Positions 9,055-64,000 of a stretch of 64,000 nt of DNA are shown here, in pieces. The notes below the pieces were generated by a model. That model was not told the origin of the DNA, searched no databases, and saw nothing but the letters and a program-made list of their open reading frames with translations. Made by a program: the position numbers and the translations under genes. The stretch's first letter is position 1. Every line of letters starts with the position of its first letter. This stretch comes from Octopus bimaculoides (taxonomy: Eukaryota), in assembly GCF_001194135.2 (NCBI RefSeq), contig NC_068995.1, positions 2,887,297 through 2,951,296 of the forward strand, written 5' to 3'.

Positions 9055-9606
9055 TCATTGGTTTACTCTACCTCTATTATATTTCCTGCTGGAAAAATGG
9101 GTCTTGTCTATTTTGACTACCACCGAAGTTCCATTCTTCAAGTCCATGTCATCACTTTGGATAGGAAGTTGTCCAATAAAACGAATACCCTCATCTTTGC
9201 ACAACTGGGCCCAGTCACTGCTGGCTTTCGCAACAGTATCTTGTAATAGCATATCTTTAGTCCAAGAATAAATGAAAATCACTAATTGTGACAGATCCAG
9301 CTTAGATTTATCAAAGACCGAATCAGTTCTTATAGACTTCCTATTTTTACAACGGCTGCAGTACCACCTATATTTGTCTTCGCAACCTGTATATTTATTT
9401 ACACCACATGGAATATTACATGTAGTGCATGTATATGTATTTCTAATCAATCGACGTTTGGCCAACCATTCCAAAATATCCAAAGAACCTGGATCACCAA
9501 TTGACTTGGACAAAGAATTTAAGGTCCACTTTTCATCTCGGATTTCTGCATCTGTCAAAACTTGGTCGACAATTTTCAATTTCTGCTTTGGACCTCTACG
9601 AGCCAT
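9055..9606 (-). mobile_element. Merlin / ISXO2 (IS1595-like) transposase, N-terminal half, truncated
   Basis: CTTC...WYCSRCKNRKSIRTDSVFDKSKLDL and VVKIDKTHFSSRKYNRGR match Merlin motifs (SIR.GS.F...L; VEIDES.F.KRKY.RGR). Stop falls at the conserved W position. Confidence 0.85.
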
Positions 9607-11145
9607 GTTAAATGATTTGCTAATACAACTATTTTATTTCTCATCTTATGCACTGTATATCAGCTATTTTACAATTTGTTGTCCAATCTCATCTAAACTT
9701 TGGTAAAATGAAAGCAAAAACGGCGTAATTAAAATTGGAATCAGCAGTAATGGAGAAAGTCAAAAATCCGACATGGATTTCATGAATTGCCGAAACGAAA
9801 AGAAAGAAGAATGAAATGCTTTAAAATAACCAAAGTAGGCCTCCCACTCCAACTTTTGTTATTCATTTTTAACTGTCAAAGTAATTTTCAGATTTTTCTG
9901 ATTTTGACATGGGATTGTGCAAAATTAAATTAATAAAAACAAAAGAAATTGTTAAAAATATCAAAATTTATTTACCCCTCCCCCAACATACATAAAGCGT
10001 CAATCTTGAGGAAACACAAATTTCTTAGAATTACATAAAGACAGGCGAAACACGACTAACTGTGCCTTCATATTAGCTCTTTACCATATTTGTTAACTAT
10101 ATTCCAGATTTATTTAGTCTCAGCACCAATTATATACAGTAGGATTATATTACATAAATATAGACAAACCAGAAGGCACTGGGTTTCTTTGATAATTTTG
10201 CAGACATCCGACCAAAATAACGAAAGTGATTATTATTAATAAAAGCATTAATTAGTATAATAATAATAACTCACTTTATAATACAGAAATGTAAAAATGA
10301 GGTTATACTTTTATTGGCTTCGAATGGATAAAATAAATATTTGAGTCACTTAAATTTTATTAATCATTTTAGAAACTAATTTAATTTTTAGGCTATTTTA
10401 ATTAACTTCACTCGAAACTGCTTATATAACTATCACATACTAAATGCATATATATATATATATATATATATAGATATATTTGTTATATACATTACTTATG
10501 CATGTGTTTTATAGACCTAATACTAGGATATTGGGGTATTTAGTTTGACACTACGGTATTATATATATATATATATATATAACGGTACATTATGTATACA
10601 CTTGTCTGATGTATATAATACTAGTATCATATACATGAAATATTCATGTATATTTTCATTAGCACCATTCTATACAAGCTCCAAATAAATACCTCGTAAT
10701 AAACACACGCACACATATATGTGTGTGTATATATAGAAATATTTATACATATTTGATCTAATTTAAAATCACTCGATATGCACACCTAAATGTATGTAAT
10801 GTACTTCAACATCATCTATCTGCAGTACTTTATCATTATATGTATATGTGTATATGTGTATATGTATTTGTACAGGAGTGTATATATATTTATGAGGATG
10901 TGTTTATATATGCGTATTCATATTTGTATGTATATATGTATATGTTATATACATTATAAATGTATACACGTGTCTTGTATGAATAACACACACACACCTA
11001 CATACACAAGTCCAAAGTAAGCTAGAATCATATATTGCAGCAAACAACTGATGAGAGGAGGGGGAGAAGATGCACCTGTTTGCAAACGTGCTCAATTATT
11101 TGATGCAAGTTTTGTTTTAATACGGTTTCGACTATTAAATAGAGT

Positions 11146-13924: not shown

Positions 13925-15479
13925 TAGTGAATCCCTTTCCATTCTTAGGTCTTTGGGGCTGAAAACCTTGAATAAGTTTATCGAGGTAATCCCTTTTTGC
14001 AATCATAAATTTTCCTCCACCTTCCTAAAACTATATAAAAATAGAAATAAGAACAAAAATAATAGTATTAGTAGTGGTAGTAATGGTAATGATAGAAATA
14101 AACATTAAAATAAAAAGACAAAAATATTGATATTAAAATGATAATAAAAATATGGATACAATGGTAGTATTTATTTTTTATTTATTTTTCATCATGGCTT
14201 ACGTTGGATTTGAAACCTAATAGTCTTTAGTTACCAAACCTGCCTGACTATTCTAAAGGGTATACTAAAAATTAGATTTTTTTTTTTTTTNNNNNNNNNN
14301 NNNNNNNNNNNNNNNNNNNNNNNNNNNNNNNNNNNNNNNNNNNNNNNNNNNNNNNNNNNNNNNNNNNNNNNNNNNNNNNNNNNNNNNNNNNNNNNNNNNN
14401 NNNNNNNNNNNNNNNNCTCATAATTATAATTTTTTTTTTTTGACTGGTAACTTTGTTGACGTCTGTGTCTTTTTTTTTTTTATCCTGAAGGGGTTATCAC
14501 CAATTTGTGCTCTATTGTGTCCTAAATACGGCGATATACCCCCGAAATAGCCATGTGTTCTGTGTTTGTGTTCCACCTATACTTGTAATCCACTGTAAAT
14601 GATGTTTATGGTTTGACTTTACTGATGTTACCTGCGGAATAGGTGAAATATGGATTTTACTTTGCCACACTTTGGATGTTCTGTTGTTGGTTTGTCCCGT
14701 GCGCTTCGGTATTCCTGTTTCTGAAATTGGATTTTACCTACGAAATTTGCTGTCATGAGGCAGGTAGTTGAACTTTCGTACTATTTATCTTGAACTTCTT
14801 TATTGGTCTCAGCGAATGAACTGTTGTGCTATGTCTCCCTATGTATTACTTTTTTCTCTATATTTTTGCTATATATATATATATATATTTATTCTACTGT
14901 ATTTGTACCGGTCTCTAATATTTTTAATCAACTTTTAATCGCAGTTTATTTATATTCTATTGTATTTTTAATCGATTTTTTTTATTCTTATGTATAAAAA
15001 TTTTGACTTCCCTTTACTAATTTGTTTTTGTGGTCTATGTTGTACTTCTTATTTGTGATCATTGGTGGGCTACGGCTTTTTGAGTCGATGACCTAACGGT
15101 TTTATTCTGCAATTAACTTTGTACCTATGTCTCAACTAGTTTGAGCACTTCTTTTACAGCCTTGTATAAATTCTTGGTTTTCTAATACAGAACTGTTAAT
15201 ATTGAATATATATATATATATATATCATAGCTAGGCTTACTCGAAATTCCCACATTCATTCAGAACATTAATAACAATTTCAATGTATTTATTTGAATGC
15301 AAAATTCTTTATTAAAAATACCTGTACATCAACACAACGATTGTTAGATTAAACATTCGTGTTTAGCCCAACGTACACCACTCGAATTTGTTTCCCTCTT
15401 GAATTTTAACATGTTCTAATCTGTTAATGAGGAGATAAATCAAAGAGACATTTCACTCATCTACTAACTGCGTATATGA

Positions 15480-15758
15480 TCATGCACTTAATGATATTTT
15501 AAATACTTTGTTTGGAAAAACGGATGGCAAGGGGTGATCTTTCGATGGTCCATTAAAATTGACGAAATGCTGGGAACACATTTGGCTATTTGCAGTGTAA
15601 ACAAAGTCTTTCATCACATGTCTCGATCTCTGAAGCCAAATACGACGAATAGCTACGTTTGCAGGATATATATGCAGTGAAATAACTTTGCCGTCTACAT
15701 TCTTCCTTCTATAGTGGCTGCATATACAGCAGTATTTGCGTGATTTCTTCGGAGACAT
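15480..15758 (-). mobile_element. THAP zinc-finger domain of a DNA transposon (ISL2EU/Kolobok-type remnant), no DDE domain
   Basis: CCIC...SLHIYP...RRIWLQ...MCSQHF...LPSVF matches the THAP C2CH pattern. Confidence 0.8.
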
Positions 15759-17879
15759 ATTAACCGGTCAGTACAGTATGTGAGTCGTTAGTCTGCGGAA
15801 GTTAAAGCAAGTCACTGAGCATGCGTACATGTCATACGGGAGAGTTCCAATCAGGGGTGGATAACAACCTTATAGGAACCCCCTATAGTATCACAATCGG
15901 GCCTCTAGATCCGTAAGGCCTAAGTGTAACCATGCCTTAAGATGGCATTGGACATACACCCACCTTTCTAACCTCAGCATATCGGATCCTAGCTTACCCC
16001 TGGTACCCTGACAACCCAATATTGGATGGATTTTAAGAAAGACAGTAATGTGTCACGTATCACTTTTAATAATCCAAGGCCGTGTCGTGCCTCCAGATAC
16101 AAATTAATTGTTGCGCAATATTTACAAAACAACCATTTTCGTATATATATATACACGAAATATTTTGAGGGATAGAAAATCTGTTTTAAAATATACTTGC
16201 ATTAAGCTCAGTGTGTGTGTGCAAGCAATGCACGAACAAAATGTCAGCTGGGCTCATTAGCCACCAGCGGACCCACAAGTGTAAAGTCGAAATTTGTCTA
16301 AGAGCATAAGGCTCTTAATGGTTAGTGATGGTCACGATTGGACAACCATTATATATATATATAAGCAATAACTACAGGGTTTTACCCCCCCCCCCCCCAG
16401 ACTTTGCCATAACCTGCAGATGTTTCCTTCAAAATTCCTACATGCTCGAAATGTACATACATCAAGGTATATTTGTAGAAAATTTCACGAAAAAATATTA
16501 ATTTTCATGGAAGTTAAGAATTTAAATGGACTCTGTTGGAATTTCCGAAAATTGTCCCCCACCCCCATTCCCAAACTCTTTCACCGAAAATTTTTGTATA
16601 TTCGGAATCTACATAATAAATACAATTTGCATAGAAAATTTCATTAAAAAATATTCATTTTTCTGAAAGTTATGACCTTCCAAAGTCTGGGGGGTAGAAC
16701 TCTGTAGTTATGCCTATATATATATATATATGTAAATATATGAACTCCAAACGTAAATCCGGAGGAAATACCGCTAAGCATTTTGTCTAGCTCGCCGCCT
16801 TTATATATATATATATATATATATACATGCATACACACATATAGACACCCATCCATACATACACACGTCTCATTCAAACACGTGCACACTCATACCCATT
16901 CAAGCAATCTTTCTATCTCACGCTCTTTCTTTTTATCCCCTCTCTCCCTCCCTCCTAACATGCACTCATTCATACACGATATCCTGCAATCACGTATTCT
17001 TCTTCTTCTTTCTCCCTCGATCACGCATTCATATACACTAATTCTTCACCTCCCTCCCTCTCACATACATTCACACTATCTCTCATTAACACACTCTTCT
17101 TTCTCTCTCTCTCTCTTATTCTCGATCATACATTCATTCATGAACATTTTGACTCACGTATTACCTCCTTTCTCTCTTTCTCTTTCTGTCTCATACGCAT
17201 TCACTCGCATACCACCACTCACTCACAGACTCCCCCTCTCCCTTTCCCTCACACACATCCGTACCCACTATCACTCACACTTACACTCACATATCCCCCC
17301 CTCTCTCTCTCCCTCTATCTTTATGTTGTAAATATTTTCAACAAGCCAGGTGTGATTATAACACCTGTCTGTGATGTTGTTACTAAGGATGAGAGAAATG
17401 TGACGTGAGAACAGTTCTCCGAGACTTTCATTCCACCATATTTTGAAATGTTGGTAACCTTGACCTACAAGAAATAGCAGTTAGATCTCCTCTAAATCAC
17501 ACCATAGTCACTTTTAGAAAGTTAACATCTGCAACACTTGATCATAGAACTGACCCAGGGTTAAACAATAGTGGTTTCACATTTTGGCACTAGGCCAGCA
17601 ATTTCGGGGAAAGGAGAAAGTCGATTACATTGACCCTAGTACTCAACTGGGACTTATTTTATCGACCTCGAAAGGATGAAAGGCAAAGTCGACCTCGGCG
17701 AAATTTTAACTCAGAGTGTAAAAGACAGACGAAATGCCGCTAAGCATTTCGCCGGTTCGCCGTAGTTGTCTGCTAGAAATAGCAGCTAAATCACATCTTA
17801 CTATCTTTCAAAGGCTTACCTACTGTTCGATAGCCCACCTCGACTTTGTTCCCTAACATTTTTTTAAAAATACATATTT

Positions 17880-23682: not shown

Positions 23683-23973
23683 ATGGAAATCATAAAGAGT
23701 TCGTTGGGAGCAGATATGATCGTTTACAGAGAGTATATTTATAGAAAAGATAAAGCCAACTTGAATACCATGTACTGGCGATGTGTTAAATCGAAATGTA
23801 AAGGGAGATTGGTGAGCATTCTGGATTATAAAGAAAAGGACGTGGAAGAAATTCAACTGAAGGTCAGGGGTCACCATTTTCATCCTCCTGATCCTTTGGA
23901 TGTGAAGGCAAGGAAAGCATTAATTGAAGCGAAGTCAATTTTGAACTGCAACGAACTACCTAGAAACAAAAAG
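23683..23973 (+). CDS. Variable exon F1: FLYWCH zinc finger (MULE-derived), 97 codons, ends in a phase-0 donor
   Basis: ATG 23683 gives MEIIKSSLGADMIVYREYIYRKDK...YWRCVKSKCKGRL...HHFH, matching the FLYWCH pattern (W-x-C..C..H-x-H). Donor AAG|GTAATC at 23973/23974; 291 nt = 97 codons. The ORF-track tail beyond this is AT-rich intron-like sequence. Confidence 0.85.
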
Positions 23974-26966: not shown

Positions 26967-27275
26967 ATGGAACGTGTTTTCAGTCAGCGAGGCAAAGAGA
27001 AGTTCTCACACAATGGCTATTTGTTTATATTTGATAAATTTAGTAGGACCGACACTGACTTAATGTTTTGGCGTTGTGAATTAATCGGCAGATGCAAAGC
27101 AAGAATTCACACAAAATTTGGCGATGTTGTGAAATTTATGAATACTCACACACATGATTGTTCACCAATAAGGGAAGTAGTAAAAATGGTCAGAAAATTG
27201 AAAAGCTGCTCTCGAAAGTCACTGGAAGGTCCAAATATAGTAATTGACGAAACATTGGGCAGTGTTTTCCGACCG
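26967..27275 (+). CDS. Variable exon F2: FLYWCH zinc finger (MULE-derived), 103 codons, ends in a phase-0 donor
   Basis: MERVFSQRGKEKFSHNGYLFIFDK...FWRCELIGRCKARIHT...HTH. Donor CCG|GTAAGC at 27275/27276; 309 nt. Confidence 0.88.
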
Positions 27276-31193: not shown

Positions 31194-32046
31194 TGTCACT
31201 GATTTTTCCCAGTCGCATTTTCCCAGCCAACATTTCCTAGTCACATTTTCGTAGCCGACATTTCTCGATAGCAGTTTTCTCCCAGCAAGACTACTTTAGA
31301 CAATATTTTCCGTTTTTATTTGCAATAATTCTATGAAAATTATAATTAACACAAGTAATCAGTAAGGAAGAAGATTACATGACGGAAAATGTTTTTATTT
31401 TGTTATGTTTAATTAAGGCTGTAAATAAATTATTTTAACTGTAAAAAGGTTATCAAACAGTTAACATTACAATTTCTCTTTATAAATACGTCATAAGATT
31501 TAAGATTAATAGCGATAAAAATTATCAAGTTATAAAGTTTGATTCATTTAGTATTTGCTTCCAGGAATATTCGAGAAATATTCGTTTGCTATAATTGAGT
31601 ATTAACAAATTTTATGCTGGAATATGGATAACAACGTTTCATACATCGCAAGTATCAGAGGCAAGGAAAAAGCTTGCAACAATGGCTATGTTTATGGGTT
31701 TGACAAGAAAAGCAAGAAAGACGACCAGCTCTTCTTTTACCTCTGCGAGAGACAAAGATACGAGCAATGTCCATCGAGAATCCATGTAAAACATGACACG
31801 GTGGTGAAACGCATGCATCAACATAACCATGCTCCAAATCGATCAAGGAAAAAAACCTTGAAAATAGCTTCTGAGATCAAAGATCATGCGGCCACTTCCG
31901 CGGAACCGTTCATAAATACCATCATAGCAGACAGGACAACTCATATACCAGCCTCTGTTGCAGCAGCAGTAATTATACCAAATGTAGGTACTCTGTTTAC
32001 TTTGCCTGTTCATTCACACAGATACAAAATACTATATATATGTAAA

Positions 32047-32800: not shown

Positions 32801-33383
32801 TTATTAATATTTCTAAGTCTCTCTAAAGGGGATATTTAATAACTTTATTAATAGTGACTTCGAATGCCACATACAAGTGTGTGTATGTTTTTATATGACT
32901 AACATTTTGAGGTTACTTACAATACCAAAAAGCTTCCACAACCATGGTTCCAGGTTCATTTCTACTGCATGGCACCTTCATCAAGTGCCTTCCACTATGA
33001 TCCGAGGCAAACTAAATATTTGTGATTAGATTCGTGTGGGTCAGTCACAATTTGATGGGGCAGATTTTTTTTATGGCCAGATGCTCTTCCTTCTATCACT
33101 TCTCATCTGATTCAAAGCAGGTAATATTTCTTTTCTAGTTCAGACATGGTTGTAAATGGAAAATTGCAAACAAATGATACTGTTTGTATAATGGGATTGA
33201 ACCTGCAATCACTCGGTTGTGAAATGAAACACTTAACCATACAGCCATGACAGCACCTCTCTGTCTGTCTGTCTCTCTCTCTTACATACATACACACACG
33301 TTCTTTCTCTTTTCCTCCCTCATCTCTGTGTGTGTGTGTATGTTTCTGGAATCTGAGGAAATATTTCTTTCATATTTTTGCAG

Positions 33384-33482
33384 AATGCTAGCTACAGTAC
33401 CAGAAAGAAATTGAGCAAATCTCCAAGAGAAGAACCCATTTCTGATATGGATCCTTTCAGTTCTGAAGTTAGTAAAGTAAAG
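33384..33482 (+). CDS. Symmetric (0/0) micro-exon m1, NASYSTRKKLSKSPREEPISDMDPFSSEVSKVK
   Basis: Acceptor ttttcatatttttgcag|AAT, donor AAG|GTAAGC, 99 nt, open in phase 0; resembles m2. Confidence 0.7.
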
Positions 33483-34056: not shown

Positions 34057-34173
34057 CAATATAGTCGTTTCAACAGAAGAAAGAAAGTGAACAAATGTCC
34101 AAGAGTGGAAAATATCAAAATGTTGTCCAGCCCTGTCACGGCTCCCTTCATTCATGAAGTCACTGAATTCAAG
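34057..34173 (+). CDS. Symmetric (0/0) micro-exon m2, QYSRFNRRKKVNKCPRVENIKMLSSPVTAPFIHEVTEFK
   Basis: Acceptor gatatatttcag|CAA, donor AAG|GTAAGC, 117 nt, open in phase 0; resembles m1 (RKK.K.PR.E.I...PF..EV...K). Confidence 0.7.
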
Positions 34174-37915: not shown

Positions 37916-39130
37916 ATGTCGGATGTAGCTGACTCAAAGCCATTATCGTCTTCACTCACGCAATCCTTTATGAATGACTTCAACGCTGATATTGTTAGCG
38001 GAACCAAAAGCGATAAAAATGTTCTGTTAGTTGCAGATGACCCTCCTCCTGCAATGAATTCTATAAACTTCATAAACCTAGACGAATGTAGCCAGCTGGC
38101 AGGTTCGAGGAACACTAAACGGGTCACCGCCAGTTCTGTTAAATTGTTTCGAGCCTTTTTAAAGGAGACCAATAATGGAAGGACTGATTTTGAAAATTTT
38201 GATGAAGAACTCCTTATCAGTCATTTGATAACTTTTTTTAAGCGGGTAAGAAAGCCAGATGGTGATCTGTATACGAAGAATGGTTTGCTGTCGATTCGTT
38301 TCGGACTAAGAAGGCGCTTGTTAGACTTACGTAAAGTCGATATTACTAAGCACCCTCGCCTTAATTCAGTTTTTACTGCTCAGATCAATAAATTGAAACG
38401 AGAAGGAAAAGGAGATATAAACCATTATCCTCCCATTAGTCAGGATGACATGTTCAAAATTTATAGTTCAGGGATTTTGTCACCCGACACGCCAAAAGGG
38501 TTGTTAAGGAAGATTTTCTTTGAGACTGAAATGTTTTTTTGTCGACGAAGTAGAGAAAACCTAAGGGATTTGAAAGGAAGTCACTTTAAAATTGAAACCG
38601 ACGATCAGGGCAAAATATATTTGACCACAGATTTTGATCCATCGTTTGGTGGTGGACCAATCAAACGGATTTATGAAACTGGCACAGACATATGTCCAGT
38701 GAAAGCCTTTCGGAAGTTTTTGCTGAAACGTCATTCTGGCTGTGAGGCGTTATTTCAACGTCCCGTGGATATAATTCCGTTTTCTGAACAGGATCCTTGG
38801 TTTTATTGTTCAGCTCTCGGCCTCAATAAACTCGCCAACATGATGAGAGAAATTTCTTCAGAAGCGTGCCTATCCAAGATATATACAAATCATTCCATAA
38901 GAGCTACCTCAAAATCGGTCTTTGATCTCGTCTGGAACGGACTCTTCTCGCAGAACTCACCGAATACAATAGCACCTGCCTCTAGTGATGTCAGCAATAT
39001 TAGTGACATAACTTCTGTTTCAATGGAGAAGCCAAAGCAACGATCATCATCATCTCAAGGAAATGAAACTGATATCGATTTGAAATCGAACTTAGACATA
39101 CAAGAAATTGAAAGGAAACACGTCCCTGTG
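37916..39130 (+). CDS. Variable exon Y1: Crypton-type tyrosine recombinase / DUF3504-like domain, 405 codons, ends in a phase-0 donor
   Basis: Uninterrupted ORF with Crypton-like motifs RKPDGDLY...IRFGLRR, FFCRRSRENLRDL, CPVKAFRKFL, LGLNKLANMMREIS and YTNHSIRATS. ATG 37916; donor GTG|GTGAGT at 39130/39131; 1215 nt. Confidence 0.88.
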
Positions 39131-46195: not shown

Positions 46196-47362
46196 ATGGC
46201 CGACCCTCCGTTCGTTGGAGACCTCAACACATCTGCTGTAGACGGTGGTTTGTACCTCACAACAGCGTTGAACAACGAAGAATTTGAAGGTTTATTAACG
46301 AAAGACTCCAAGTCCAGTCAACAGGCTGAGAAATACGCGGTGTTGAAATTCCGTCACTATCTGACCAAGCGAGGTGAACCATTGTCTTTGGAAAATTTGT
46401 CCTACCATGTGACCAGTGGTGACATGCCTGCCAAGGAGCGACTTCTTACCTACCTGACCACCTTCTTTAACGATCTCAGACGGACTGACGGCAGTAAATA
46501 TAAATTCAATGCCCTTAGAAGTATTCGTTACGCCTTAAATCGCTTTACTTTGAAGTTTGGAGTTGATTTTCTCAACGATGCTTATTTGAAAAAACCATTA
46601 AATGATGCATGGGTGGCGTTAGGCGAATGCCTGAAGCTGGAAGGGAAAGCTGATGTCCAGCATCACGATATTTTATCGTTGGAAGAAGTTAAGAAAGCAT
46701 ATGCCTGGTGTAATCAAAATCTTTCTGATCCTGATCGACTCCAAAAGAGAGTTTTTATGGATATTTACCTCTACTTTGGACGTCAGTGCCGACAGAATTT
46801 ACCACACCTGACCAAAGATAATTTCGGCATGGACGTCGATGCTAACAACCAGCGTTATGTTTACTTTATCGATAAAGCCGGCGACACAACCCGTAAAAGT
46901 AACACCCAGCTAGTGATGAAAGAACGTGTAGGATTTGTTAATTGTCCCGTAAAGATGTTCCTAAAATATGTTTCCAAATTAGACCCACATTATCCGCGAT
47001 TCTTCTGTCATCAAAAGCTAAATGTTGACCCGCCCTATCACACAGTTTGGTATACAAAACAGCCGATGGGTGAGAAGAGAATGGCCGAGTTTATGAAATC
47101 CATTTCGAACGACGCCGGTTTGTCTAAAGTTTACACAAACCATTGTTTGCGTTCCACACTGCTGTATCTAATGGAAGAAGGTGGGTTGGATGCTAAGGAT
47201 GTCAGTCGAATAACCTGTAGTCAAGCACCTCACGAAGGATCCATACCCGAGGTCCCTTCACCAGCACAACGTCCCTTACAAACACCACATGTCGCCACTA
47301 CAAACACGTGGTCCTCACATTCTGGCACTTCACTTCACTCTCGGAATAAAAAATCATCTCAG
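46196..47362 (+). CDS. Variable exon Y2: Crypton-type tyrosine recombinase / DUF3504-like domain, 389 codons, ends in a phase-0 donor
   Basis: Motifs RRTDGSKYKFNALRSIRYALNR, YFGRQCRQNL, CPVKMFLKYVSKL, WYTKQPMGEKRMAEFMKSIS and YTNHCLRST. Start context CCAAAATGGCCG; donor CAG|GTAAGT at 47362/47363; 1167 nt. Confidence 0.88.
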
Positions 47363-56828: not shown

Positions 56829-57130
56829 GAGGAGAACAACTGTGAACTGTACCCCAGTGTTAACAATGTAGGTAATACATACTCACTAAACTCGTTCAAT
56901 GGTAACGTTCAGGTAGAGAAACAAGCAGCAGAGAAAGACATTGTGGAAACAGCGGCAGTGAACCCTATGGAGTTCAAGCTGAGGCAGTCGGAATTTATGG
57001 AAGCTCAGAAGCAACAGGCTGAATTCATAGAAGCCCAGAAGCAACAGGCTGAGTTTATGGAAGCTCAAAAGCAACAGGCTGAATTTATGGAAGCCCAGAA
57101 GCAACAGGCTGAGAAATTAGCCGAGGAAAG
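56829..57130 (+). CDS. Constant exon C1: phase-0 acceptor, coiled-coil-like (EFMEAQKQQA)x4, phase-2 donor
   Basis: Acceptor tttaattttccag|GAG GAG; donor AAG|GTTGGT at 57130/57131; 302 nt. The phase matches the acceptor of C2. Repeat variants are mostly synonymous. Confidence 0.8.
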
Positions 57131-57833
57131 GTTGGTAATAAATCTTGCTATTTAAGTGTGAGATTTGTTGTTAGTTCAATATTTGATTTAAATTTTGAAG
57201 AATTCAGTCTTATGCTAAGACTTAGGAAAACTTTTGAAAGGTTTTTCAGAGTATTCCAAATATGATTCATTGTTTTCGTGGTTTAATTTTGATTTATTTT
57301 CTTGCATTTACTATTCCTGTCACCAACCTTTATTTACTCTTTGTCCAGAAAGGGTTTCCTTTTGTTTTTTTTCTTTTGGATTCAAGAGGAATTGAAATGT
57401 GTAGAGCTAGCAGATGATTTGTTGACAAAAAATATCAACAAATGTCACCTTCTGCTGCCACAGCCACTAATGGTTGCATCACCAGCAGCCCAACTCGTAA
57501 ATAGTGATGCTATCATTTGTAGCTGAGCTGAAAAACGGTTACGTCACTGTTTACAGCTGTAGCTCTGCATAGACTGTGAACAGTCACACACAGAGTAAAG
57601 AATGTGTGTACAAATAGATGTATGTCTGCTATTGTTATATATAGAGCTCCACATAAATTATCATAATCTAGGCTGCTTCCTAATGCAATACTGTGTTCCT
57701 TGATGATCCTTTGTGGTTGAGCATCTAAATGCTCTCTGAACACCTACAGCTGAGTTCCAAACAATGATAGTGGTGAAACGTGTGTAGGAACTTTAATAAT
57801 ATAAACTTGAGTTTATCCTTATTTCTCTTATAG

Positions 57834-57867
<34 letters not shown>

Positions 57868-58744
57868 GGAGTAAATGGAGCAAGAACACACGAAAATGAA
57901 AAGTGTTGCTGAAGAGGTCACAGATGTGTGACAAAAGATTTCTGGACAATGGACATGAGTTAAAATAATAAAATAAGAACAGTAATAAACGAGTGGAGGT
58001 AAAATATATAGTGCGTGTGCTTATTAGGCAAAAAAAAAAAAAAACACGACCATCCCAAAATACAACAAGATATATATTAGTGTTACACCACTAATATATT
58101 TAAGCAATGTGTTTGTGAATTGTTGATCAGTTGGATGTGATACTGATGGACGAGCAATACTTCCTGAAATATGCATATACACCCATTACCTGTTTTCTCT
58201 GTCTTTGATTGCATTGTTTATACAGACATATTTGTGGCACGAAATGCTGTCAATTTCAGTGCTGGCTCTGAACTCTATAGAAAATCCATAGAGGTAAACT
58301 TATATATATATATATTTGTGTATGTTTTGAATGTGAAACAATGTGTATATGTTAATAATATACACACTGTCTGACAGCTGACAGAATGTTCATTGATGGA
58401 TGTAAAAACACTGCAGTTGGTGACAGTTAAAAGAATGGAACGATTGAAATATAGTGTCAGTTATTAGAGTTGGATTTGCTGTTGTTTTGTTTTAACCTGG
58501 TGTTTGCTGTCAGCTCTGGTCAGCCTGACCAAACATCACACAGGATCCAACTGTGACCATTATTCAATGTGTCCTTTTGTTATTTTTTTATTCTTTTTCT
58601 TGTTTCAGTTGTTGGGCTGTGGCCATGCTGTGGCACTGCCTTGAAGAGTTTATTCAAACGAATTAACTTCTAGTACTTATTTCTGTGTCTTCTACTTACT
58701 TGTGAAGGTGCATGGCTTCTACTGACAAGTGAAACCACAAGGCA

Positions 58745-58995
58745 CAGGTGGTTAGAGTGTTGGGCTCACAATCACAAGGTTGTGAGTTCGATTCCTGGAC
58801 TGAGATGTGCGTGTTGTGTTCTTAAGCAAGACACTTTATTTCACGTTGCTCCGGTTCACTCAGCTGTAGAAATGTGTTGCGACATCACTGGTGCCAAGCT
58901 GCATCAGCCTTTGCCTTTCCCTCGGATAACATCAGTGGCATGGAGAGGGGGTGCTGGTACGCAAGGGCGACTGCTGGTCTTCCATAAATAACCTT
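58745..58995 (+). mobile_element. tRNA-derived SINE family C. Related copies: about 35860-36120-, 54790-55040-, 63085-63425-
   Basis: GGTTAGAGTGTTGGGCTCACAATCACAAGGTTGTGAGTTCGATTCC tRNA-like head followed by a SINE body. Confidence 0.7.
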
Positions 58996-59242
58996 ACCTG
59001 GACTTGTGTCTTGGAATTGCTCCCCTTCCAAAAGCACCATCTACTTCACACATTCAGCACTTCTTATGCCACTGTTGTCATCCCTATGCACCACATGGCC
59101 ACACCGGATTTCTCTTTCTACACAGTTTTCCTTTCAAGGCCTTACTAATGTGTTGTTGAAGGATACAAATCTTATGTTTCCAGCCTTTTATGTTTGCTTT
59201 CTTTTCTTTCTTTTTGTAAACATGTTTATATTTTTTTTGTAG

Positions 59243-59384
59243 GCAACAAAGACAGAACGAAAGCAAAGTATATAAATATATGGTTTTGAATCACGAGAAG
59301 AAAATTCTGGAAACTCTTCGAACGCTTTGGAAAGGAAACCAGTTCTGTGATGCGATGTTGCAAAATGAATGTGTGTCTATTCCA
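59243..59384 (+). CDS. Constant exon C2: N-terminal part of a BTB/POZ domain (not in the ORF track)
   Basis: Acceptor ttttttttgtag|G (phase 2), then QQRQNESKVYKYMVLNHEKKILETLRTLWKGNQFCDAMLQNECVSIP, then donor CCA|GTAAGT (phase 0). L..L...FCD..L......P is the classic start of a BTB fold. The rest of the domain was not found in the window. Confidence 0.8.
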
Positions 59385-60897
59385 GTAAGTTTTAGCCGTT
59401 GTTTATTGTAAGATAACTAGTCATCATCATCATCATCGTTTAATGTCTGTTTTCCATACTGGCATGGGTTGGACGGTTCCCATCATATGATGGGCAACAC
59501 TGTAGTGTTAATATAAATTTGTTTGTTATGCAATAATGTTGTATAAGACTACTTTAATATGAAATCATCAATGTTATGCAATAGTGTTGTATGCAAGACT
59601 ATTTTAATATAAAGTTAATGTTAGAAATAGATCCTGTTGGATACAAGACTCAACCTTTGTGAGAGAAACTTTGTAGATAGAAACTGTATGGAAGCCCTTT
59701 TGACAGACTCTCTCCCTGTAATTCAAAAGGTCAGCTTTGTCACAGTTATGCTGGTTTTTTTCCATGAATTGCATTTAGTATACACATGTCTGGAATACTC
59801 AGCCACTTAGATGCTAGTTCAGTAATGATCTGTTTACATACAATAAATACTTTACCTTACAATTGAGGGGTAGGGGAATTGTAGTGTGCAATACTCCCCC
59901 CCCCCCCCAAAAAAAAACAAAGGTTACAAAACGCTGGCTGAGAAGTAAGTTCTTACACAAGCAATTTCCTCCCTGTCATAATTCGTTGTTAGACTTTTGT
60001 TTTTGTTGTTGTTTAGTGTAAGGTGAGCCATGTTGTAACAGAATTACGATGGAAAATGTTCCAAAATAACTTATTATTTACACCACAAATACATCCAATC
60101 TTATTCAACCGAGAATAATTAATTCATCTAAATTCAGAGAAGGAAAACAACGTTGTCATATTTTTGGGACAAATTAATTTGATTGCTGAAAAAACAACAA
60201 AATAAAAACTCAAGAATTAAAAAAAAGAACTGATTTTTGTAGTCCAAGGGAGGTAATTTTTTCCTTTAGAACAACCCACGAAAAGAAATGAAATGAGATT
60301 AGTGAGATATTTGTTCAGCTATGGCCTTAAGGTCTGAAATTTGGGGAAAAGGGCCACTCAATTAAACTCGTACTTATTTTATAGACCCTGAAAATACGAA
60401 AGCTAACGTTGACCTGGGCGGAATTTGAACCCAGCATGTTAAGACAGACGAAATGCCACTGAGTATCTTATTTTGTCTCTTGTGATAGTGATATTTCCCT
60501 GGCCTATGGCAAAACCATTAAGTAACAGTTTGAGGCGGTGGATTAACAGAATCGGTAATCGGTAAGCCTTGCGTTATTTAGTTCTGGCCCTCTATGTCCT
60601 GAGTTCAAACCATGTTGAGGTCAACTTCATTTTCCATCCCTCCAGAGTGATAAAATGAAATCAAGTACGAAACGGAATTAACTAATATTGGTCTGTCAGA
60701 GGCGTCTTTAAGTAAGAGATTCTGGCTGAAGATCCTAAAAGAATCTTCATGGTGCTGCTTGTGCTTCAATGGTGGATAAGGGTTCTAACACCAGCTGCTA
60801 TATATATATATATATACTTTATTAAAAAGCCTCAAAAATATCACAAAAACGTTCCCGTTTGTTGGACAGTTTTGTTTAGAATGGAGCAAGATGGAGT

Positions 60898-60931
<34 letters not shown>

Positions 60932-62278
60932 CAAGCATGGAAAAGTGTTAAATGATGTATGTATTTATGATCGTGCAAGCTCAATGAAGTGATGGCACTC
61001 TTCTGACCAGAAGTAGCAATAATCAACATCATCATTATCGTCCGCTTTCCATACTGGCATGGGTTGGAAAAATTGACAGGAGTTGGCCAGCTGGAGGACT
61101 GCCCAGACTCCAGTTGTCTGCTATGGCATCGTTTCTATGGCTGGATGCTCTTCCTAATGCCAACCATTTTACAGAGCATGCTGTATTTATAGTCACATTT
61201 GTAATAGAATGAGTAGAAAAACTGTTGAAAACTGGATGTAAGGGAGACAACTCTTCATTACCAGCTGACTAAATTGTTGTCAACGATAACCAACCCCCAA
61301 CTCGGTACAGTTAGGAGTGGATTTTGTCTTTAACCTTCTGGCACTCGTGTTATTCTGTCAGATGTAATACTTATTCAAATTGTTTTCAATTAATCATGCA
61401 TTATCTTGTAGCTTTGAGATTTCAATTATGTAATTATTTTAAGAAAGTCATTGCAGAGTAGTCGTGAGAGGCTTGATCCGGTCAGTTTGAACATAAAACA
61501 GGGAGAAGATTTGGGTCAGATATGACCTGTTTGAATGTCAAAGGGTTAAAGCCAACTCGTGAGAGCAAGATATACATTAGCATGTGTAAACAACGTACAT
61601 TTGCACTTTGATAGTTGATAACTTAGTGAATACTGATTTTTGTTGCAATCAGAACAGCCATGATTATCGGTGACAACTCGATCTTTCAAGTTCAAACTTG
61701 TGCCTTAGTGATCAGATGGTGACTCTATTTAGTAAAGTGGTGCAAAGAGACTGGCTACCATCTTGAAGGACATTCATCATCATCATCATCGTATAACGTC
61801 CGTTTGCCATGCTGGCATGGGTTGGATGGTTTGACTGATGTCTGGAAAGCCATTATATCTAGTAATACTGGTGCAACTAATTTTACTGCTAACAGGAAAA
61901 GTTCACAAGTGTAAAGCAATGTGTGTGTATGTTTTCTTTTACTTGTTTCCAATCATTTGGCTGTGACCATGCTGGAGCACCACTTTGAAGGGACTTAGTG
62001 TTTCTAAGAAATAGTACTTATTCTTTCAGTCTCTTTTGCTGAGCCACCAAGTTACAAGGACATAAACACACCAGCATTGGTTGTCAAGCGATGGTGGGAG
62101 CTGGGGGACAAACACAATCACATATACATATGTAAAATATATATAGGGTAGTGAGTTTTTTTCCAAATTTCACTACCAGTGGCCTAGCATGTATAAAAAG
62201 TCAATTGACAACATATTCTCAATATAAAATAGTGTACATTTAAACACAAGAAAAAACTGCCTTCAACAGGCAGTTTTT

Positions 62279-62746
62279 ACATGCTAGAAGAAGTAGTCAA
62301 AACGACTAAAACCATATTTAAGGGCAATCTTCAAAAGGAAAGAAAAATAATAACTCTTACCTTGTTATTTCATTCCGGTCAGACCTAAAAATAATTTGCT
62401 AGGCGAATCTTTCATCAGTGATTGCGCCATAACACAAACATAATTATGAGATGATTAACACGTGTCTCTTTATTATACATTATAATTTTTCAAATTCACC
62501 ACTCAAGCACAGTTTCATTTGGCAGTAAATGATTAACTACCAAATTAATCTTGTAAAAATTACTAAAAACATATACGTAAAATATATATAGAGTAGTGAG
62601 TTGTTTGTTAGAAATTTCACTACCAGTGGCCTAGCATGTATAAAAAGTCAATAGACAACATATTCTCAATATAAAATAGTGTACATTTGAACACAACAGA
62701 AAACTTAAATGTGGTTTTGGTCGTTTTGACTGCTTCTTCTAGTGTA
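62279..62746. mobile_element. MITE with about 40-bp TIRs, preceded by a partial direct duplicate of its interior
   Basis: CTAGAAGAAGTAGTCAAAACGACTAAAACCATATTTAAG versus CTTAAATGTGGTTTTGGTCGTTTTGACTGCTTCTTCTAG. Segment 62148-62250 repeats at about 62594-62697. Confidence 0.75.
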
Positions 62747-63616
62747 CACATGACAGGCTTCTTTCAGTTTCTGTCTACCAAATGCATTCGCGAGGCTTTG
62801 GTTGACCTGAGACTATAGAAGAAGACACTTGCCCAAGGTGTCATGCAGTGGGACTGAACCCAGAATTCTGTGCCTACATACATATACACTCATGCACACA
62901 TTCTTATGTATGTATGTATGTATATGACGATGAGAAAATGATGATAATTATGTTATCATCATCATTTAACACCTGTTTTGCATGCTGGCATGGGTTGGTT
63001 GTTTGACAGGAGACCGGTTAGCTGCAGGGTTGTGTCAAGTTCTAATGTCATGTTTTATATATATCTATATATCTCAGCGTTGGTTACGAGGACTCCAGTT
63101 GATCAGACCAACGGAACAGCTTGCTTATGAAATTAACGTGCAAGTGGCTGAGCACTCCACAGGCACGTGTGCCCTTAATGTAGTTCTTGGGGTGGAGATT
63201 CAGTGTGACAAGGCTGGCCCCTTTGCTATACAGATACAACAGAAACAGGAAGAAAGAGAAAGTTGTGGTGAAAGAGTACAGCAGGGTTCGCCACCCCACC
63301 CCCTGCCAGAGCCTTGTGGAGCTTCAGGTGTTTTTGCTCAATAAACACTCACAACGCCTGGTCTGGAAATCAAAACCGCAAACCTATGACTGTGAGTCTG
63401 CTGCCCTAACCACAGGGCCATTGCACCTCCACAATTGTATACATAATCATACATGGACACACACTGCTCTGTACTCAACAAAATGCTTTGTTTCTGAAGC
63501 ATATGTGTACCTAGTTCTAACAGTGAGTCATTAGTATCATTTATGTCTAAATGCAATTATATATATTTATATAATTGCATGGCCGCAGTCAAATGACTGA
63601 AACAAAAAAAACAAAA

Positions 63617-63650
<34 letters not shown>

Positions 63651-63679
63651 TCAGGTACACGACACTGCTTTTCCCCTTC

Positions 63680-64000
63680 CCAGGCCACAGGCCCACACCC
63701 CCAACACCCATACTGTTAGGATTGGCACTCTCAACGTCGGCACGCTGAAAGGTAGATCTGGTGAAATTGTTGAGATGCTTGAACGGAGATGCGTAGATAT
63801 GTGCTGCATCCAGGAAGTAAGATGGAGAGGAGGTTCTGCAAGGTTCCTCACAGGCAAAGAACACAGGTACAAGATTTTCTGGGCAGGGAACACTGACGGG
63901 GTCGGGGGCGTAGGAATACTTCTAGCGGAGAAATGGGTGGATAAGGTAATCGAGGTCGTTAGAGTAAGTGACAGAGTACTTAAGATCAGACTAGTGCTTC
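63680..64000 (+). mobile_element. RTE LINE apurinic endonuclease domain, open to the window end
   Basis: VRIGTLNVGTLKGRSGEIVEMLERRCVDMCCIQEVRWRG...GVGILLAEKWVDKVIEVVRVSDRVLKIRLVL with no stops; probably a young copy. Confidence 0.92.

Follow-up and report, generated by a model that had tools for sequence, protein, structure and literature searches.

A BTB-coding exon in the constant 3′ part of an Octopus bimaculoides gene with alternative FLYWCH and DUF3504 first exons

The Drosophila gene mod(mdg4) combines a constant BTB domain with variable FLYWCH domains (PMC11426971). A second described system is vertebrate KCTD1, in which isoform b is an alternative 5′ variant of a BTB gene that carries a single-exon, Crypton-derived DUF3504, the Crypton having been inserted upstream (Kojima and Jurka, 2011; PMC3212892). 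KIAA1958 has two isoforms with different DUF3504 exons (PMC3212892), and a survey of transposon-derived factors found that octopus CENPB and THAP proteins often carry a BTB domain (PMC10027918). Here, we analysed a stretch of 64,000 nucleotides (nt) from Octopus bimaculoides (contig NC_068995.1, positions 2,887,297 to 2,951,296, forward strand), referred to as the window, and within it an exon at window positions 59243–59384 of the gene LOC106879774, referred to as BTB exon 1. Two exons in the constant 3′ part of the gene code for the BTB domain, and BTB exon 1 is the first of them. The results also make it likely that the gene encodes an isoform family of dimerising regulators.

BTB exon 1 reads ttttttttgtag/GCAACAAAG...TCTATTCCA/gtaagt on the + strand, where a slash marks a splice boundary. 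The upstream donor at 57130 reads GAGGAAAG/gttggt, and joining 57130 to 59243 gives the translation ...AEKLAEER-QQRQNESKVYKYMVLNHEKKILETLRTLWKGNQFCDAMLQNECVSIP. An earlier sequence-only reading of the window had proposed this junction, which was reproduced exactly, as well as the exon with its GTAAGT donor, which the sequence and the RefSeq mapping bear out to the base. The end of the exon needs one correction: the donor position stands, while the final codon, CCA (P), is complete and the next G is part of the GT donor, which is in phase 0. The exon codes for the last base of an Arg codon followed by 47 codons, comprising the N-terminal extension (YKYMVLN followed by the helix HEKKILETLRTLWKG) and the first core strands (QFCDAML and CVSIP) of the BTB domain. 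No further copy of the exon was found across the window.

The exon is identical to a coding exon of LOC106879774 in RefSeq isoforms X2–X7 (XP_014784958.1 to XP_014784962.1 and XP_052829115.1), with 100% identity between the O. bimaculoides proteins and the window. The UniProt entry for the gene is A0A0L8G1G0, named "BTB domain-containing protein", and the orthologue in O. sinensis and O. vulgaris is LOC115220336. The annotated proteins (P0003 and P0004) were found by an exhaustive search of cluster representatives with a two-sequence profile, at 122–124 bits, and protein names were taken from a cluster look-up. The exon and the gene model are therefore already public, and the exon itself is not new. 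The sequence-only reading had called it hidden, which is correct for a track of open reading frames (ORFs), since the stop-free stretch around the exon is only 63 codons long, and incorrect otherwise. The gene and protein accessions were absent from the searched literature text and from the supplements of PMC10027918, and the locus is apparently uncharacterised and undescribed in the searched literature.

The features of the locus, in window coordinates, are as follows.

14755–14763, + strand: candidate first coding exon of X7, ATGAGGCAG/gt, coding for MRQ; a weak assignment
23683–23973, + strand: FLYWCH-1, alternative first coding exon of X5, running from an ATG to a phase-0 GT donor, with a Pfam FLYWCH match
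26967–27275, + strand: FLYWCH-2, alternative first coding exon of X4, from RefSeq mapping, with a Pfam FLYWCH match
31624–31983, + strand: FLYWCH-3, alternative first coding exon of X3, from RefSeq mapping, with a Pfam FLYWCH match
33073–33120, + strand: short alternative first coding exon of X6 (MARCSSFYHFSSDSKQ), from RefSeq mapping
33384–33482, + strand: exon of 99 nt common to the FLYWCH isoforms, X6 and X7, skipped by the DUF3504 isoforms
34057–34173, + strand: second exon common to the FLYWCH and short isoforms, 117 nt
37916–39130, + strand: DUF3504-1, alternative first coding exon (Crypton tyrosine-recombinase-like), running from an ATG to the phase-0 donor GTG/gtgagt
46196–47362, + strand: DUF3504-2, alternative first coding exon of X2, splicing directly to 56829, from RefSeq mapping and with an orthologue in cuttlefish RNA
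56829–57130, + strand: constant coiled-coil exon (the coil exon), 302 nt, with the phase-0 acceptor ttttccag/GAG
56991–57112, + strand: 30-bp tandem repeat of 4.1 copies with EFMEAQKQQA units, inside the coil exon
57131–59242, + strand: 2112-nt intron that separates BTB exon 1 from the coil exon
59243–59384, + strand: BTB exon 1, 142 nt, with GT-AG splice sites; an exact RefSeq exon with a BTB match, conservation and RNA evidence
59385–64000, + strand: first part of the last intron (gtaagt...); the window ends before the terminal exon

Mapping of five RefSeq isoforms (X2–X6) gave one unique GT-AG solution on the window for each, and all five use 56829–57130 followed by 59243–59384. Isoform X5 starts with 23683–23973 and continues through 33384–33482 and 34057–34173 into these two exons; X4, X3 and X6 start with 26967–27275, 31624–31983 and 33073–33120, respectively, and are the same as X5 from 33384 onwards. 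X2 joins 46196–47362 directly to 56829. The first coding exons lie upstream on the same strand and are mutually exclusive, each running from its own ATG to a phase-0 donor; three encode a FLYWCH zinc finger, two encode DUF3504, and the remaining one or two are very short. From the FLYWCH and short first exons, splicing proceeds through the two small common exons, while the DUF3504 exons go straight to the coil exon, which thus accepts splices both from the DUF3504 first exons and from 34057–34173. The length of every variable exon is a multiple of 3 nt. The coil exon, BTB exon 1 and the terminal exon are common to all isoforms, with differences only in the upstream exons, and the claim that BTB exon 1 identifies a constant region therefore holds. 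DUF3504-1 is the counterpart of the first exon of isoform X1 of LOC115220336 in O. vulgaris and O. sinensis, with 95% amino-acid identity. The MRQ site at 14755–14763 is the only such site in 1–33384, where an estimated ~0.1 would be expected by chance; its position upstream of all FLYWCH exons suggests a far-upstream promoter and transcripts that skip every long variable exon.

Compared with mod(mdg4), and with lola and its zinc-finger modules, the octopus gene likewise has one constant BTB part and many alternative modules, which yield an isoform family from one locus. The order is mirrored, however: the octopus proteins carry their variable modules at the N-terminus, and their BTB lies internally or towards the C-terminus. 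In mod(mdg4) the 3′ exons are trans-spliced, whereas the variable exons of the octopus gene are 5′ first exons on the same strand, which argues for ordinary cis-splicing from alternative promoters and not for trans-splicing. The number of isoforms also differs (at least 30 in mod(mdg4) against ~7 here). The arthropod TTK-type BTB carries an FxLRWN motif in its N-terminal extension (PMC11426971); the octopus exon lacks this motif and reads KVYKYMVLNHEKK (YKYMVLNHE) at that place.

The likeness to KCTD1 isoform b lies in a DUF3504 that is encoded by one upstream exon, forms an alternative 5′ variant and is spliced to the BTB part. A DUF3504–BTB fusion is present at the octopus locus, since exons 37916–39130 and 46196–47362 join 56829 and a cuttlefish RNA supports the splice. 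The BTB of KCTD proteins is of the T1/tetramerisation type, and none of the 51 PDB matches of the octopus BTB is a KCTD protein. In addition, KCTD1 has one DUF3504 exon, whereas the octopus gene has two together with three FLYWCH exons and a coiled coil. Given the difference in BTB type, the two cases are of independent origin, and KCTD1 isoform b is an analogue and not an orthologue. KIAA1958 resembles the octopus gene in having alternative exons, each with a different diverged DUF3504, in one gene; it differs in having neither a BTB nor FLYWCH exons.

The membership of the exon in a BTB domain was assessed on the full proteins. Isoforms X2–X7 matched Pfam BTB (PF00651) at 43.2–44.0 bits (E = 3e-11 to 5e-11), well above the gathering cut-off of 20.5, and the cuttlefish orthologues matched it at 40–45.7 bits. 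The match spans positions 4–106 of the 110-position profile and starts at L518 of X2, which corresponds to window position 59325, inside the exon. The sequence-only reading had taken the FCD motif as the start of a BTB fold and had made this depend on a BTB match for the extended protein; the extended proteins carry that match at 43–44 bits. The scan with HMMER of the lone 47-residue peptide, which the same reading had suggested, was less fruitful. Neither this peptide nor the 124-residue join nor the two-sequence profile gave a BTB match at E ≤ 10 against Pfam (hmmscan) or the PDB (phmmer), and the result for the peptide alone is uninformative because only ~20 of its 47 residues lie inside the Pfam BTB model.

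At the level of the peptide, a graft test was informative. The peptide was fused, in register, to a BTB domain from which the first 24 positions of the profile had been removed. The remainder was a human KLHL12 BTB sequence, which Pfam recognised as BTB. On its own the remainder scored 85.1 bits, and with the octopus peptide it scored 100.5 bits (+15), compared with 101.7 bits for the orthologous cuttlefish peptide and 115.2 bits for the native KLHL12 N-terminus. Sixteen composition-preserving shuffles scored 83.9–90.0 bits (mean 86.7, standard deviation (SD) 1.8). With the real peptide the alignment reached back to profile position 3–4. By these scores, the fit of the peptide to the beginning of the BTB model exceeds chance by ~8 SD.

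The BTB region matched 51 PDB sequences, the best being gigaxonin (E = 7e-9), KLHL3, KLHL26, ZBTB17, KBTBD2, IVNS1ABP and BACH1. The alignments begin at or before the NHEKKILETLRTLWKGNQFCDA (NHEKKILETL) helix of the exon, upstream of the Pfam core, and stop at about residue 133 of the query, beyond which the sequence is of low complexity. From these sequence comparisons, a long-form BTB of the BTB-Kelch/BTB-ZF type, with an N-terminal extension (strand β1 and helix α1) before the FCD strand, is supported, in agreement with the type assigned by the sequence-only reading. The BTBs of gigaxonin, KLHL3 and KBTBD2 are the closest solved ones (E = 7e-9 to 8e-7), with a likeness that takes in the NHEKKILETL helix and the FCDA strand and extends as far as the final helix of the BTB. 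The octopus protein differs from them in lacking BACK and Kelch, and its post-BTB sequence has no Pfam domain. With the BTB-ZF proteins and BACH1 it has in common the long-form BTB with an N-terminal extension, and BACH1, ZBTB17, ZBTB7A, ZBTB9 and ZBTB48 are significant PDB matches. It differs from this group in having neither C2H2 fingers nor a bZIP, in a BTB that is not N-terminal, and in its candidate DNA-binding domains, which are FLYWCH and DUF3504. No BACK, Kelch or zf-C2H2 was detected by Pfam in the full proteins of any isoform, the complete terminal exon being read in O. vulgaris. The candidate DNA-binding modules are the upstream variable exons, and there is no recognised domain downstream of the BTB to point to either a transcription factor or a Cullin3 adaptor, a choice that the sequence-only reading had left open.

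The exon is conserved between octopus and cuttlefish. The one cluster returned by a word-indexed search is represented by P0001, an ORF call of 42 residues from a genomic Logan contig of 2 kb (L001). When L001 was aligned with the whole window by blastn, only 59265–59390 aligned, with 82% identity, and the flanks were unalignable. The exon in L001 is likewise 142 nt long and keeps an open frame, and its acceptor (acag/) and donor (/gtaagt) match those of the octopus in position; between octopus and cuttlefish, only the exon can still be aligned, and not the introns. The second cluster member (P0002) derives from a 1152-nt RNA-derived contig (L002), which matches L001 at 1–37 and 652–797 with 99–100% identity, without the intervening 616-nt intron. 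Beyond the donor, L002 goes on with GTTCACAAAATC... (VHKILLIACCPK...), a sequence that L001 lacks. The comparison of L002 with L001 therefore demonstrates that both orthologous splice junctions are used in cuttlefish RNA, and the spliced use of 59243 and 59384, on which the sequence-only reading depended, is seen at the orthologous junctions. L002 joins the orthologues of DUF3504-2, the coil exon, BTB exon 1 and the exon that follows it, and the Pfam BTB match of P0002 has E = 5e-10. The C-terminus of P0002, DRKSVV*, was considered as a stop and rejected, as positions 1127–1152 of L002 are an Illumina adapter artefact (AGATCGGAAGAGCGTCGTGTAGGGA).

The constant part of P0002 is 100% identical to a protein of the cuttlefish Acanthosepion pharaonis (P0025), from which we infer that L001 and L002 belong to A. 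pharaonis or a very close relative. P0025, an annotated A. pharaonis model, and P0002 carry different DUF3504-like N-termini on the identical constant part. Alternative heads thus exist in Decapodiformes and predate the octopus–cuttlefish split. The BTB domain is ~94% identical between octopus and cuttlefish, and for BTB exon 1 the proportions of non-synonymous (pN) and synonymous (pS) differences are 0.11 and 0.83, the latter being saturated. Between O. bimaculoides and O. vulgaris, the ratio of non-synonymous to synonymous substitution rates (dN/dS) is 0.05 for the coil exon and BTB exon 1, which are under purifying selection. The same ratio is 0.06 for DUF3504-2 and 0.18 for DUF3504-1, and rises to 0.34 for FLYWCH-3, 0.43 for FLYWCH-2 and 0.71 for FLYWCH-1, the FLYWCH values being based on few substitutions.

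The remainder of the constant region was located with the help of O. vulgaris. The coil exon, whose orthologue is present in the cuttlefish RNA, contains four EFMEAQKQQA units in RefSeq and the window and three in UniProt A0A0L8G1G0, which is either a copy-number or an assembly difference. The intron that follows the coil exon varies in length, from 616 nt in the cuttlefish to 2112 nt in the window and 3959 nt in O. vulgaris. The window holds 4616 nt after BTB exon 1, and a scan for the BTB continuation (pattern H[KR]xVLA) found none in 59385–64000 or in the downstream part of L001. The O. vulgaris locus (L003, 78 kb), found through the O. vulgaris X1 orthologue, has the same exon order as O. 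bimaculoides. Its next and last exon lies 8367 nt downstream of BTB exon 1, with the acceptor tttcag/GTGCATAAA and 357 codons (VHKILLIACC... to the stop, ending MALQ*). This terminal exon carries the rest of the BTB and a serine-, threonine- and proline-rich tail of ~275 residues without a Pfam domain. The expectation that the rest of the protein lies outside the window was thus correct.

The last intron contains further elements. In O. vulgaris, L003 71403–71507 is a decayed, incomplete copy of BTB exon 1, made up of its 3′ half and the first ~37 nt of its intron; it has 81–86% identity, reads TLWKENQFCDVMLQNDFVSIL, has lost its donor and lies 2.5 kb before the terminal exon. No counterpart was found in window 59385–64000. 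A short interspersed repeat (tcatcatcatcatcgtttaa...ccatactggcatgggttggacgg) lies at window 59400–59480, starting 20 nt past the exon donor, and similar copies occur across the window and in the O. vulgaris locus. A fragment of a non-long-terminal-repeat retrotransposon endonuclease (Exo_endo_phos, E = 0.005) occupies 63643–63999 on the + strand and runs off the window end.

The variable exons were characterised by their domains and by their divergence. Pfam detected FLYWCH on X3–X5 at E = 4e-8 to 9e-12. On X1 and X2 it detected DUF3504 at E ~1e-5, which is under the gathering cut-off, but the YTNH[CS][LI]R box is present. The H-x-x-R box is kept in both DUF3504 exons, as YTNHSIRAT and YTNHCLRST. 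By eye, no catalytic tyrosine was seen at the expected downstream distance in either exon, which together with the box fits Crypton recombinase domains that have been domesticated and are no longer catalytic. Identity among the paralogous variable exons is only 30–47%, and they are therefore old duplicates and not recent insertions. All variable exons keep their ATG, open frame and phase-0 GT donor in O. bimaculoides and O. vulgaris. A FLYWCH profile search returned only short genomic ORF calls from other cephalopods, which carry no information on the architecture outside cephalopods.

The sequence context of the gene is ~36% G+C, with four N gaps and many repeats and transposon fragments. Upstream, on the minus strand, an ORF at 15483–15767 encodes a THAP zinc finger (Pfam E = 4.8e-6), and an ORF at 9058–9633 encodes a 192-residue cysteine-rich, transposase-like sequence without a Pfam match. 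These two ORFs are probably transposon remnants or a neighbouring gene.

Under the proposed mechanism, alternative promoters and first exons would give at least seven proteins from one locus. Each would place a different transposon-derived, nucleic-acid- or chromatin-binding head on the common coiled-coil and BTB dimerisation body. The coiled coil and the BTB may form homodimers and heterodimers between isoforms. In long-form BTB domains the N-terminal extension forms the dimer interface (PMC11426971), and the exon-coded extension and first strands would supply this interface in the octopus protein. The FLYWCH and DUF3504 heads could direct the proteins to different DNA or chromatin targets, which would make them transcription or chromatin regulators. 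Their origin may lie in transposon ORFs captured upstream of a BTB gene. A more far-reaching account, which we offer tentatively and consider slightly less probable than not, describes the gene as a mirror-image mod(mdg4) of coleoid cephalopods. Here, repeated capture and tandem duplication of FLYWCH (Mutator-like) and DUF3504 (Crypton) ORFs would have produced mutually exclusive first exons, and the resulting combinatorial dimerising regulators would have been kept since before the octopus–cuttlefish split.

Four observations weigh against the reading as a family of dimerising regulators. The O. bimaculoides isoforms are computational RefSeq models with names marked PREDICTED; the direct RNA evidence covers the DUF3504-2 route only, and in cuttlefish only; and the FLYWCH exons evolve fast (dN/dS up to 0.71), their constraint being weakly shown. 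Lastly, an AlphaFold2 model of X7 from a 7-sequence alignment had a mean predicted local distance difference test score (pLDDT) of 38. It placed a helix over the coil-exon residues at a pLDDT of 70–85 and left the BTB unmodelled, so the BTB fold rests on sequence evidence. The PREDICTED names and the high ratios of the FLYWCH exons also favour a rival in which the long variable exons are transposon ORFs in 5′ introns, mis-stitched by gene prediction, and the real gene consists of the short isoforms and the constant region. The transposon derivation of FLYWCH and DUF3504 and the richness of the window in repeats and transposon fragments are in keeping with it. We nevertheless consider it very improbable, given that a DUF3504 exon and the constant region occur spliced together in the cuttlefish RNA contig, that the starts, frames and donors of the variable exons are kept in two octopus species, that the DUF3504 exons have a dN/dS of 0.06–0.18, and that the paralogous exons have diverged as old duplicates. 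That BTB exon 1 is itself a chance open frame with fortuitous splice-like sites could be argued from the failure of the 47-residue peptide alone to match Pfam or the PDB at E ≤ 10. This possibility is refuted by its exact match to annotated exons in three octopus species, the island of conservation in the cuttlefish, the spliced RNA contig and the strong purifying selection.

The main rival concerns function, and regards the protein as a Cullin3 substrate adaptor similar to SPOP, whose BTB recruits Cullin3 while the alternative N-terminal modules select substrates. In SPOP, the substrate-binding domain is N-terminal to the BTB, an arrangement that the octopus heads match. The closest solved BTBs by sequence are moreover those of adaptors (gigaxonin, KLHL3, KLHL26 and KBTBD2), but the BTB-ZF and BACH1 domains are likewise among the PDB matches. 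After the octopus BTB no BACK, 3-box or Kelch was detected, the sequence past about residue 133 being of low complexity, and both FLYWCH and DUF3504 have been described in proteins associated with DNA or chromatin (PMC11426971, PMC3212892). We regard the adaptor role as unlikely. The sequence-only reading had also suggested that the gene may have begun as a BTB protein of its own, initiated at the internal Met (MVLNH), to which all upstream exons were added later, and we find this similarly doubtful. The Met is conserved in the cuttlefish, but so are the 12 codons before it, the AG acceptor and the exon length. The aligned BTBs of gigaxonin and KBTBD2 start ~14–15 residues from their own N-termini, a BTB-first layout being usual, and KCTD1 isoform b provides a documented precedent for the capture of a Crypton ahead of a BTB gene; at the octopus locus, however, the upstream coil exon is constant too and no annotated isoform starts at this Met, the only protein that does so, P0001, being a prokaryote-style ORF call on genomic DNA that reads into the intron. 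The searches also gave no relative outside coleoid cephalopods that could polarise the history.

The gene as we read it, with dimerising isoforms built on a constant BTB, is a host–transposon domain fusion achieved through alternative first exons, in which a single coiled-coil and BTB body is combined with five transposon-derived modules of two unrelated kinds. This arrangement has been conserved in octopus and cuttlefish, and extends the example of KCTD1 isoform b and the "transposase capture" model to cephalopods. It also provides a natural comparison with mod(mdg4), where a similar result is reached with the opposite gene layout.

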